NCBI GenBank assembly: GCA_965112155.1 | Contig: OZ218098.1 | DNA: 64,000 nt | Origin: Podarcis liolepis | Lineage: Eukaryota | Direction: 5' to 3' (one strand) | In this document: positions 7,932-64,000 of the stretch, piece by piece | How the letters are laid out: every line of letters begins with the position of its first letter | Position numbering within the stretch: the first letter of the stretch is position 1 | Notes under the pieces: model-generated | The model's input: the letters and a program-made list of their open reading frames with translations, nothing else | Databases searched by the model: none | What the model was told of the DNA's origin: nothing | Program-made: the position numbers and the translations under genes

Positions 7932-7942
7932 TCAGAACACAC
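7932..7942 (-). CDS. DNAJB2: DNAJB2 isoform a (HSJ1a) terminal coding exon (GVF*), ~283 aa isoform
   Basis: Internal donor GCAG|GTGCGA at 12479/12478 in exon 9 joins acceptor ctccccag|GT GTG TTC TGA. This mirrors the short '-VF' C-terminus of mammalian HSJ1a. Confidence 0.8.
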
Positions 7943-9265
7943 CTGGGGAGACAAGCAAGGAGACAGGACAGGAGGGAGGGGGGAGGAGGAGGAGGGGGGA
8001 GAAAAACAGACACCGAGTGAATCAGACAGCAGTGAAAAGTGTTGTGACAGCAAGCAGAGCCTGGGCTGTGCACTACATCATCCCCCCCCCCCCGCCCCCG
8101 GAGGTCAGGCTTCACCAAGCAGGAGTAAGACTTGCAGTACTGAGAGGGAGTGGGGTGGAGGGGCTGGTGAGGGGCTCTAGCATCAAGGCACAGCTGCTGT
8201 GGGCTCAGGATTAATGATAAGGTCAAGAAAGAGCCACTGGCCTTTAACAAATCAGGGGAGGAAAGGGTGCATCCAAGCATGCAAAATAAGGAACTGTAGC
8301 CGGTTGCTCTGCAGAACCATCCCCTTCCCACCCATCCATGGTCCCCTGCCAGTTAAAGGGTTAAACATGACATGAAAATATTCACCCTGCAAAGGCTTGG
8401 TTGCAAATTGCTCATAAGGAAGGGAAAAGGGAACCAGAGGTATGAAGACCTGGGGAGGGGGGAAACGAGGGGATACATTTTTTCCAATGTACAAAATTGG
8501 GGGAACTTGGGGGTGTGGCAGGTGCACATGTACCTTCTATGAAATATTTGGAATGAGTGAAATTCTTTTTTAAGACCTGATTTTAGTTGCTGAAAATGTG
8601 TGGTTGGAAGTTTTTTTAAACGTAAAAGGACCTAGAGCTTTAGAGAATGACCATTCCTGTGGATACTGCAGTCATATGCAACACTCAGTTCCAGGAAACT
8701 TTTCTGGAGCAAGAGGCTGAAGATGGGTGACTAAGTTGTGACCCTCCAAAACTTGCTGGACTCCAACTTTCATCAGCCTCACACCCAGGATGGTCAGGGC
8801 TGATGTGGCGTTGTGATTCAGCAGCATCTGGAGGGCCACAGGTGAGCCACTCCTGAGTGAGAGGCTGCTGCTTTCATCTATGAGAGAATCTAAGTAGGCA
8901 CAGGGAGAACATGGGTTAGACACAGTGTTGTTCAACCTTGGGCCCCTGGATGTTGTTGAACTACAACTCCCATCATCCCCAGCCAGCTTAGCCAATGATC
9001 AGGCATGTTGGGAGTTGTAGTCCAACATCACCTTGGGCTCCAAAGCTGAAGAGCACTAGGTTCAAGCTGTGCTTATGGAGAAGTGGAGCCCCAGGTTGTA
9101 CACAAAGGAGAGGCAAACTCACCTGTTTTTGTTATTTATAGGCAATCCTTCCTACAAAAGGAGCTCAGAGCAGATTAAATGTGTTCTCTTGGTGGCCTCA
9201 CATATGGGCAATGTTCAACACCCAATTCTATATTAACCAGTGGAGCTCTTAGAAGCCTTCACACA

Positions 9266-9404
9266 GAATAATAGAAATGTAGAGTTGGAAGAGACCACAA
9301 GGGTCAACCAGTCCAAGCTCCTGCAATGCAGGACTCTTTTACCCAACGTGGGGCTCAAACCACGACCCTGAGATTAAGAGTCTCCTGCTCTACCAACTGA
9401 GCTA
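9266..9404 (-). mobile_element. tRNA-Lys(CTT)-derived SINE with CR1-like 3' tail
   Basis: Minus strand reads TAGCTCAGTTGGTAGAGCAGGAGACTCTTAATCTCAGGGTCGTGG, then a CR1-type tail also seen at 18408-18480. Confidence 0.7.
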
Positions 9405-62400: not shown

Positions 62401-63353
62401 AAGAAGGGGGGGCACACTGCTCACATACAATTTCTGAAAGCTCTGAAGGCCACTTCACGCACACACCCTTCAAAGGTAAGGGGGAAACAATGGCCACCAC
62501 AGCATGGGGGCAGCCCAATGCATGAAATCACACTAAGTCTTTTAGGGGGGCGTGCCTGTGCATGTATAAGGTAGCATTAAGGACCTACATGAATGTGCCA
62601 AGGATAATGAGTGAGGAAAGGCCTATAGTTAATGGGGTCTGCCTGTCTGTGTTAGCATTTTGCATGTAACAGGTGCCAGAATATACTGCAAACCTTTGAT
62701 ACAGTTTGCACATCTTTTGAGCCTTTTTGTGTCCTTTTCTTCCAGGTCTCTCCTTTAAATGATGCACTGAGGGCTTATCTACACTTACCTTTCTTCCGCT
62801 CTTTCCAGGCACGGCCCATGCATTAAAGCTTCGTGTCTGAGCACCCTCCTTTTTTTTCTTTTTTTTTTTGCTCTGAATCCACTCTTTAAAGCTCAAACGG
62901 AGCAAATTGCAATCTGCTTAAAACCCAAATTGATGTTTGCTCCAACTGAGTGCTAAAGAGCAGGATTTTGTGAGGAAAGCTCTGGGGTGGGGAAGCCCCC
63001 ACAAACTGCTACACTTAGTCCCCAGTAGGTGCAGAAGTGTCAAGTGGTTTTGCTTTCCCATTTTGGCATCCAAGTCATCAAATGAATTTGCTTGGATTTC
63101 TTGTTTTAAGCAAAATCCCAATCTTTGTTCTACCACATACTTGCATAGGAAACATGCAACTGGTAAAGCTCTGATCAGGAGGAGGAGAAGTACTGCACAA
63201 GAGGCAGTGATGAGAGAGGGTTGGTAAGAGGTTGAATACTTACTGTCTGAAAGTACTTGATAGGCTTCTGAAATCTCCTTGAATCTCTGTTCTGCAAATT
63301 GCTTGTTTTCTGTGTTTTTATCTGGGTGCCACTTTAGAGCTTTCTTCCTGTAT
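56403..63353 (-). CDS. DNAJB2-like tandem paralog C (first coding exon beyond window end)
   Basis: Exons 63353-63244 ([36 protein letters not shown]), 61503-61450 ([18 protein letters not shown]), 60044-59934 ([23 protein letters not shown]), 59349-59247 ([16 protein letters not shown]), 57644-57574 ([23 protein letters not shown]) and 56671-56403 (GVPTERAS...[10 protein letters not shown]). In frame if exon 6 is skipped. AATAAA at 55966-55961. Confidence 0.82.
56700..57362. mobile_element. Non-autonomous hAT element with internal GC-rich minisatellite
   Basis: TIR-like ends CAGAGGTTTCCAAC / TTTGAAAACCACTG, 8-bp TSD GGTTAGAC/GGTTAGAT, CACCCCC(T)GGG repeats at ~56940-57150. Related copy at ~16682-17105. 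Confidence 0.75.
58252..58280. repeat. (CA)n microsatellite
   Basis: Direct reading. Confidence 0.9.
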
Positions 63354-64000
63354 CTTTATTGTCCCCCAGAAAACACAATGGATGATAAAAGTCAGTATCC
63401 CTGTGACCATTTCTACAACTACAGATTTGTGTATGGTTAGCCATATTTTTCCTGGCACCAGGGCAAGGAATGGCGCAGGCTCCTGTCCCTAGTCTCCATT
63501 TCTTCCAGAAGCAGAAAAGACTTCGACTTTCCCTCAGCAAGCTTCTCATTACTTCATGGCATGCTCTATGGCCATCCAAACCATACCGGTCTGTCTCAGC
63601 TTATGTGAGGGAGTCTTCTATGAAACTCCCATATAGATGGCACCAGACACCAGGGCAAATTGCCCACATGACATCACAATCTTCTCAGAATTGTTGTGGG
63701 GAAAGAGACATCTTTTCGCATCTATGCTAAGACTTCCTACAGGTATTCAAATTCTGATGTGTCAAGAAATGACCAAAAAAGTCAGCTATCCCATTCCAAC
63801 GTCACCACAGATTCTGTGGGACGATCAGCTGAAAGAGTTCAACTCTCAGGAACTGTTGACACGGATCTTGGTGGCTGCCAGAACTTAATTGCCCCCAAAT
63901 GAAAAACCTTAAGGGTCTTGTGTTAGCTGGGGGGGGGGACCCTCATAAATTACATGTTGGCAAATGCTTGGAGGATCCTGAAAAAATTATATGCTGTTTG

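Follow-up and report, generated by a model that had tools for sequence, protein, structure and literature searches.

A 64,000-nt stretch of the Podarcis liolepis genome (assembly GCA_965112155.1, contig OZ218098.1), referred to here as the window, is likely to carry a tandem array of four functional Hsp70 co-chaperone genes of the DNAJB2 (HSJ1) lineage that arose by old DNA-level duplications in sauropsids after the split from mammals. The genes, named C, B, A and D in order, lie head-to-tail on the minus strand beside a PTPRN-type gene; D is DNAJB2 itself. As the HPD motif of the J-domain is intact in all four, all four should act through Hsp70: each would still dock on the chaperone and trigger its ATPase, while the remaining modules, which differ from gene to gene, would direct Hsp70 to different places or clients.

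A six-frame scan of the window identifies exactly four HPDKN-containing open segments, all on the minus strand, near positions 63328, 50591, 37677 and 19083, and a tblastn search with Zootoca DNAJB2 (P0003) maps co-linear exon sets at all four loci. With boundaries read from the sequence and exons joined by script, all four models display an open frame and AG/GT at each internal boundary. They have in common a 110-nt exon encoding the HPD motif (WHPDKN in 4/4 genes) and identical phases: exon 1 is followed by a phase-2 junction, and phase 1 applies both behind the 110-nt exon and on entry into the last exon. The joined protein models were used for local alignment and trees only; database searches were queried with single exons or database proteins. 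Against the Pfam J-domain profile (PF00226, cut-off 27.8 bits), a near-identical orthologue of A (P0136) scores 89 bits, a near-identical orthologue of B (P0121) 71 bits and a snake orthologue of C (P0292, 70% identical) 93 bits.

Pairwise comparison of the gene regions with blastn aligns the exons alone, at 72-85% nucleotide identity, besides one microsatellite and one inverted repeat. The introns are thus unrelated, which excludes an assembly duplicate; the four copies are old duplicates and no artefact. A first-pass annotation of the window, made from the letters alone, had described four same-strand, intron-containing copies with common phases, a 110-nt HPD exon and intact GT-AG sites, and had read their dissimilar introns as a sign of old DNA-level duplication; the exon models and the blastn comparison bear out both points. 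The sole similarity between paralogues outside the exons consists of a GA microsatellite common to 14562-14590 and 34785-34830 and a 151-nt element (84% identity) found in inverted orientation in an intron of D (16692-16842) and an intron of C (57192-57342).

Gene D (10639..20966, minus strand) is the DNAJB2 orthologue according to tblastn, boundary reading and phylogeny. Its coding exons lie at 20966-20902, 19108-18999 (the 110-nt HPD exon), 17709-17656, 16618-16502, 15387-15307, 14992-14887, 13825-13755 and 12715-12273, all on the minus strand. Joined together (65, 110, 54, 117, 81, 106, 71 and 443 nt), they encode a long 'b' form of 349 aa with the CaaX end CSLL. A short 'a' form uses a donor after 12479 (after ...QHRA) and a terminal exon at 10666-10639 encoding DPDGQAYSV*, an end identical to that of the Zootoca X1 isoform. 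The exons of D are 94-100% identical to Zootoca DNAJB2 (tblastn), and a protein search with the last exon retrieves lizard, snake, turtle, bird, frog and mammalian DNAJB2, with Zootoca vivipara as the top match (96%). In a maximum-likelihood tree, D groups with Zootoca DNAJB2 inside lepidosaur DNAJB2 (100/99; ultrafast bootstrap/Shimodaira-Hasegawa-like approximate likelihood ratio test, UFBoot/SH-aLRT).

Like human and other mammalian DNAJB2 (HSJ1a/HSJ1b), D contains a J-domain with HPD, a glycine/phenylalanine-rich (G/F) region, a serine/threonine-rich (S/T) region, a beta-domain and two putative ubiquitin-interacting motifs (UIMs) in the same order. It likewise has alternative soluble and CaaX (geranylgeranyl-type, ...L) C-termini and lies tail-to-tail with a PTPRN-type gene carrying mir-153. 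The second UIM scores 18.6 bits, below the Pfam UIM cut-off of 21 in the way common for motifs of only 17 residues; the first was recognised by eye. D would represent the canonical gene, with two UIMs and alternative soluble 'a' and geranylgeranylated 'b' (CSLL) ends. In contrast to the mammalian gene, D is the last of four tandem relatives, of which A has kept the CaaX form only, with degraded UIMs, C has an acidic tail in place of the UIM region and B is reduced to the J-domain. The S/T region followed by the beta-domain (...STST..NGK.ITTKRI.ENGQER.E.E.DGELK) is encoded in exons 6-7 of D, A and C, as in the non-canonical class B'(ST) J-domain proteins, whereas B has neither. The human members of this class, DNAJB2, B6, B7, B8 and B3, are paralogues produced by sequential duplications (bioRxiv 10.1101/2025.09.06.674649). 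The duplication scheme proposed for them, DNAJB2 > B6 > B8 > B7/B3, makes no mention of a sauropsid tandem expansion of DNAJB2 (bioRxiv 10.1101/2025.09.06.674649).

Homologues were sampled by scanning 1.84 billion representative sequences without a profile, Zootoca DNAJB2 serving as the query, followed by name look-ups, and include snake and turtle copies, DNAJB2 of shark, teleosts, axolotl and a marsupial, and DNAJB6 and DNAJB3 as outgroups. The resulting tree (63 rows, 278 columns, LG+C20 with posterior mean site frequencies, PMSF) recovers an amniote DNAJB2 clade (98/95), a mammal clade (100/98) and a sauropsid clade that holds D, A and C (100/93). Within the last, one group unites A of squamates with three turtle rows (99/97) and another unites DNAJB2 proper with C (95/92). 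A and C would accordingly be co-orthologues or paralogues within sauropsid DNAJB2. Mammalian DNAJB2 falls outside the sauropsid clade, and the expansion is thus independent of the mammalian one, as had been proposed. The extra mammalian copies DNAJB3, DNAJB7 and DNAJB8 are intronless, whereas the lizard copies A, B and C have retained all of their introns.

Gene A (31462..39208, minus strand) is a DNAJB2-like paralogue of 391 aa, supported by exon models, orthologue matches and the tree. Its exons (65, 110, 60, 117, 105, 103, 71 and 542 nt) lie at 39208-39144, 37702-37593 (the 110-nt exon), 36538-36479, 35844-35728, 34377-34273, 33923-33821, 32659-32589 and 32003-31462 on the minus strand. Exon 5 (34377-34273) at first escaped tblastn and had been overlooked in the first-pass annotation, whose module descriptions of the four proteins are otherwise correct. 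The protein consists of a J-domain, G/F region, S/T region, beta-domain, degraded UIMs, a polybasic stretch and a conserved C-terminal stretch of 30 aa that ends in the CaaX motif CTVL. It is 97% identical to a Podarcis muralis 'DNAJB2-like' protein (P0136). Pfam reports no UIM match in A or C of the window at E <= 1. The earlier description of the UIMs of A as degenerate holds for UIM1, whose consensus is gone in every A orthologue of the tail alignment. For UIM2 it has to be narrowed, since a one-residue insertion (LHRATLAYS) occurs in lacertids and Rhineura only and the consensus spacing is kept in geckos, skinks, snakes, iguanians and the tortoise. With its permanent CaaX end and polybasic stretch, A presumably represents a membrane-anchored version of DNAJB2.

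Orthologues of A, annotated as 'DNAJB2-like' proteins of 380-422 aa, were found in 15 squamates, with 46-97% identity in the last exon; all major squamate groups are represented, the geckos by Gekko and Paroedura. A C[TAIV][IVL]L end is present in 14 of the 15 aligned, and the tail motif ENDS.L.D.RYVFP.I.PSRRERES.MC..L is kept across them. The nearest turtle proteins are a Gopherus 'DNAJB2-like X8' that ends in CVLL (P0173), a Chrysemys protein (P0171) and a Pelodiscus 'DNAJB6-like' protein (P0155). The C-terminal halves of P0155 and P0171 turn Arg/Pro/Ala-rich or unrelated, which looks like the outcome of frame or exon annotation errors, and their automatic names are misleading.

The grouping of A with turtles bears on the view, implied in the first-pass annotation, that A is a lizard or squamate novelty. 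In its strongest form, the whole expansion would be squamate or lacertid, and the turtle 'DNAJB2-like' proteins would be independent duplicates drawn to A by long-branch attraction. The turtle A-like end branches are indeed long (0.41-0.54), P0171 and P0155 are partly mis-annotated, and the sampled sequences include no A-type protein of a bird, crocodilian or tuatara. Yet A and the turtle rows group at 99/97 under a site-heterogeneous model, and a tree that forces the lepidosaur copies together as one clade is rejected (delta log-likelihood, lnL, 52.9; approximately unbiased, AU, test p = 3e-5). Outside the tree columns, the tortoise protein has tail features in common with A besides its C-terminal CVLL, and the Pelodiscus protein carries the A exon-5 signature YSFCSY. 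A purely squamate origin is consequently improbable. The turtle grouping and the rejected lepidosaur clade place the A/D duplication before the turtle-lepidosaur split, and A appears to be of sauropsid-stem age rather than squamate-specific.

Gene C (56403..63353, minus strand) is a DNAJB2-derived paralogue with at least 239 aa within the window, as indicated by exon models, orthologues and the tree. Its exons (110, 54, 111, 103, 71 and 269 nt) lie at 63353-63244 (the 110-nt HPD exon), 61503-61450, 60044-59934, 59349-59247, 57644-57574 and 56671-56403 on the minus strand. Exon 1 is absent from 63354-64000 and must therefore lie beyond position 64000, the window edge. C encodes a J-domain, G/F region, S/T region and beta-domain followed by an acidic tail of 89 aa (isoelectric point 4.7), without UIM or CaaX motif. 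It may thus serve as a soluble version in which the client-binding S/T and beta core is kept and an acidic tail replaces the UIMs.

Orthologues of C occur in three snakes, and C is 70% identical to the snake proteins P0162/P0292. All three snake orthologues are automatically named 'DNAJB6-like', which raises the alternative that C did not arise from DNAJB2 but belongs to the DNAJB6/DNAJB8 lineage and was relocated. The lack of UIMs and CaaX, as in short DNAJB6/B8 forms, would agree with such an origin, as would a language-model search (ESM Atlas) whose nearest matches are generic DNAJB6-like clusters. Phylogeny speaks against it: in the tree, for which DNAJB6 and DNAJB3 form the outgroup, C falls within the sauropsid DNAJB2 clade (95/92), and forcing C together with DNAJB6/B3 is rejected (delta lnL 27.7, AU p = 0.02). 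C also sits in the DNAJB2 array, has the same 110-nt exon and phases, and begins its last exon with GVP in phase 1, as DNAJB2 does. A DNAJB6 or DNAJB8 ancestry is highly improbable on these grounds. Placement of C with lepidosaur DNAJB2 or with squamate DNAJB2 is compatible with the data (AU p = 0.35 and 0.31, respectively), and C appears to be a later duplicate from the DNAJB2 side that arose at the latest before the snake-lacertid split.

Gene B (44061..51784, minus strand), a J-domain protein with a new tail, is supported by an exon model, spliced contigs and orthologues. Its exons lie at 51784-51660, 50616-50507 (the 110-nt HPD exon), 49065-49015 (cassette exon 3) and 45700-44061 (the tail) on the minus strand, with sizes of 125, 110, (51) and 1640 nt. 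Skipping or inclusion of exon 3 yields a protein of 624 or 641 aa, respectively, of which the tail makes up 545 aa; the ATG yields a 22-aa lead ahead of DYYEVLG. The Pfam DnaJ match covers only the first 55 of the 63 profile positions, which indicates a missing or degenerate helix IV. Like C, B has no CaaX box. Exon 3 has a tttcag acceptor and a GTGAGT donor, encodes 17 aa in frame and is a relic of the helix-IV exon. It is included in the database models of Lacerta, Anolis, Candoia and Pantherophis and skipped in others. With tblastn, the interval from 50507 to 44061 shows no exon for a G/F region, S/T region or beta-domain. In spliced contigs, exon 2 or 3 runs straight into the tail, and B thereby departs from the defining layout of class B'(ST). 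B would thus have lost exons 4-7 (G/F, S/T and beta-domain) and kept exons 1-2, along with a degenerate exon 3 that is optional; a 1.64-kb exon follows in phase 1. The product would effectively be a class-C J-protein that tethers Hsp70 to whatever partner its tail binds.

Four RNA-type runs were aligned to 44650-50649, within gene B. Single contigs span the tail exon and the 110-nt exon in three of them, X1 and X3 from one related organism (~97% identical) and X5 from another (~95%), which together represent two studies and two organisms. The joints are 50507>49065 and 49012(+3)>45697/45700, with CT..AC on the plus strand corresponding to GT..AG on the gene strand; X5 also shows the direct joint 50505>45698, in which exon 3 is skipped. 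Contigs extend past 50616 into letters matching exon 1, and depth is 12-52 in exons against 0-4 in introns. B is therefore transcribed and spliced. The direct connection of J-domain and tail described in the first-pass annotation has to be amended accordingly, as the main transcript places the 51-nt exon 3, overlooked there, between the two. Within intron 3 of B, a repeat fragment of ~90 nt (47297-47389) reaches a summed contig depth of 2,000-30,000 in all four runs, including that of a more distant organism, with loose ends on both sides; it has no Rfam match and is probably a very abundant short interspersed element (SINE) or the tail of a long interspersed element (LINE).

A search with the B tail matches only squamate proteins (n = 15, 561-654 aa, 42-94% identity). 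They come from Podarcis, Lacerta, Zootoca, Rhineura, Phrynosoma, Pogona, Phrynocephalus, Anolis, Hemicordylus, Python, Candoia, Pantherophis and Crotalus, and hence from lacertids, an amphisbaenian, iguanians, a cordylid and snakes. The matches include no B protein of geckos, tuatara or turtles, but the search was word-limited and does not establish absence from these groups. From this distribution, B would have arisen at the latest before the cordylid-snake-lacertid split. The orthologues bear the automatic names 'DNAJC21-like', 'cylicin-1-like', 'SRRM2-like', 'nipped-B-like' and 'uncharacterized'. B resembles DNAJC21, cylicin-1, SRRM2 and nipped-B only in composition, through its J-domain (DNAJC21) or Lys/Ser/Arg-rich stretches (cylicin, SRRM2). 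In contrast to these proteins, B matches no Pfam family other than DnaJ at E <= 0.1, and the only detectable relatives of its tail are squamate J-proteins of the same architecture; the names are composition artefacts.

Another reading of B is that annotation or read-through has fused two separate genes into a chimera, a truncated copy of DNAJB2 and a lysine-rich gene unrelated to it. The tail is unlike any DNAJB2 exon, a 4.8-kb intron separates the two parts, and the entries P0132 and P0135 hold the tail without a J-domain. Even so, three runs contain single contigs in which exon 1, exon 2, (exon 3) and the tail are connected by canonical GT..AG joints within one open frame. PF00226 and the tail coexist in one protein of 612-654 aa in 11 of the 15 orthologue entries. 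The tail exon itself, moreover, lacks a start-codon context, and its phase-1 entry fits exons 2 and 3. A chimera is therefore extremely unlikely, and B is best regarded as a single gene with a new J-protein architecture, the most novel part of the array.

The tail of B is organised in zones. The first is an acidic, Ser-rich block (residues 101-190) with a net charge of about -15 in one 50-residue window, and the second is a Lys-rich basic block of loosely repeated units, five-fold expanded in Hemicordylus. In the Hemicordylus capensis orthologue (P0126, alignment columns 501-584), a 14-aa Lys-rich unit is repeated five-fold in tandem, VNVEKTELHAGRDK, so that repeat copy number differs between lineages. 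The tail is more than a disordered stretch; it ends in a conserved block of ~125-129 aa (44064..44450, minus strand), whose Cys- and Trp-rich motifs are invariant or nearly so in 13-16 squamate orthologues. This block matches no Pfam family and has no usable ESM Atlas match. AlphaFold2 with a 16-row alignment predicts one helix only for the C-terminal 129 aa (predicted local distance difference test, pLDDT, 53; predicted template-modelling score, pTM, 0.18). A Pfam scan of the tails of A, B and C returns nothing, the B tail and P0121 giving DnaJ only and otherwise noise at E >= 0.26. One feature in common with DNAJB2, a phase-1 'GV.P' start, raises the idea that the tail might be an expanded exon 8.

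The 3' untranslated regions (UTRs) of the extra genes are short, as had been noted: poly(A) signals lie 39, 48 and 18 nt past the stop codons of A, B and C, respectively, and the contigs of B stop ~45-60 nt past its stop, near the AATAAA 48 nt downstream. The CRE-like promoters suggested earlier, together with a merely conjectural role in spermiogenesis, were not recovered: the 600 nt preceding the ATG exon of A and of B contain no TGACGTCA (cAMP response element, CRE) or half-site. A CpG scan finds no island 5' of A or B either, in keeping with the first-pass annotation. Its claim that the array is free of islands fails upstream of DNAJB2, where one covers 26501-28500 (GC 0.51-0.68, observed/expected CpG 0.7-1.1), between the 3' end of A and the ATG exon of D. 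Given this position and a tttgcag acceptor just 5' of the D ATG exon, the island probably contains the DNAJB2 promoter and a non-coding first exon. It is the window's only island, except for a borderline 500-nt stretch over the last exon of A.

Several points weigh against an array of four functional genes derived from DNAJB2. BLASTP detects no significant similarity between the B tail and the last exons of D and A, and a tree of the J-domain only (59 columns) fails to place the parent copy of B. The stem of C is long (0.77) and forms a trichotomy with archosaur-plus-turtle DNAJB2 and lepidosaur DNAJB2. The AU tests were run under LG+F+G4 on constrained tree searches that were stopped early or run in fast mode. 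Reads were aligned to the region of B, so the RNA evidence pertains to B; the RNA nature of the runs was guessed, and spliced joints with canonical ends argue strongly for it. Over 1047 nt of the B tail, the ~97% identical organism and the window differ by 28 substitutions (18 non-synonymous over 835 sites and 10 synonymous over 212 sites), and the resulting ratio (pN/pS ~0.46), weakly below 1 on so few changes, is weak evidence by itself, though in agreement with constraint. Hsp70 binding, prenylation, ubiquitin binding and localisation are all predicted from motifs. Linkage in other species is indicated by equal contig sizes and by locus tags. The D, A and B proteins of one species report a contig of the same size in Zootoca, Hemicordylus and Python (a 1.45-Mb scaffold). 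Phrynocephalus has neighbouring locus tags (001958/001959), those of Phrynosoma are close (022293/022296), and the Pelodiscus 'B2-like' and 'B6-like' proteins report the same 411-kb scaffold.

Alternatively, the three extra copies could be pseudogenes or genes close to being lost, decaying or evolving neutrally, with frames that merely happen to be open still in this species. A and C evolve faster than D (stem branches of 0.38 and 0.77 versus at most 0.08 along DNAJB2 proper), and the UIMs of A are degraded. For the B tail, identity between lacertids and either snakes or iguanians is as low as 42-51%, and its pN/pS is not far from 1 given 28 changes. Decay is nonetheless very improbable. Splice sites and frames are all intact, the tail motifs are invariant, and B is spliced at the depth given above. 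Full-length orthologues of the same architecture persist over Squamata, and those of A into turtles; the chance survival of a 545-aa frame is implausible. The occurrence of A, B and C orthologues across squamates confirms the retention of the copies that had been surmised from the window, and favours four functional genes.

DNAJB2 is a neuropathy gene whose two isoforms and UIMs are hard to separate experimentally. In reptiles, its modules appear to have been sorted into long-kept separate genes, namely the CaaX-ended A, the UIM-less soluble C and the J-domain-only B with its new tail, and the array thus offers comparative and biochemical handles on the share of each module in Hsp70 targeting. 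More speculatively, and with considerable doubt, B could be a new class of Hsp70 recruiter, so far squamate-only. A minimal J-domain with an optional helix-IV exon would be followed by a charge-segregated disordered linker (an acidic block of phospho-Ser type, then Lys-rich repeats) and a Trp/Cys-rich C-terminal motif docking on a nuclear, chromatin or sperm-head partner. A, found throughout sauropsids, would then have made the membrane-anchored HSJ1b function permanent, and the array would be a natural dissection of DNAJB2 modules. A full-text literature search found no paper on these extra genes or on DNAJB2 in squamates, reptiles or lizards. The public records of A, B and C are automatic predictions, and several carry names (DNAJC21-like, cylicin-1-like, SRRM2-like, DNAJB6-like) that prove misleading. 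The published account of how the DNAJB2/6/8 lineage evolved also gains a branch through the array.

Downstream of D, the 3' part of a PTPRN-type gene (739..3479, plus strand) is convergent with DNAJB2. Its protein tyrosine phosphatase (PTP) domain exons, at about 2837-3479, have IA-2/PTPRN (entry 2i1y) as their top PDB match, and a mir-153 precursor (739-810, plus strand; Rfam RF00650, 89 bits) lies in one of its introns. The neighbourhood of DNAJB2 and PTPRN is known, and the layout of the window matches it. Beyond the coding end of DNAJB2, a partial Rfam tRNA match (9346-9405, minus strand, 34.7 bits) is probably the head of a tRNA-derived SINE. Between the ATG exon of D and the CpG island, a 114-aa open frame (23885-24226, minus strand) resembles the C-terminal end of a LINE reverse transcriptase (…RTRWLDSV…).

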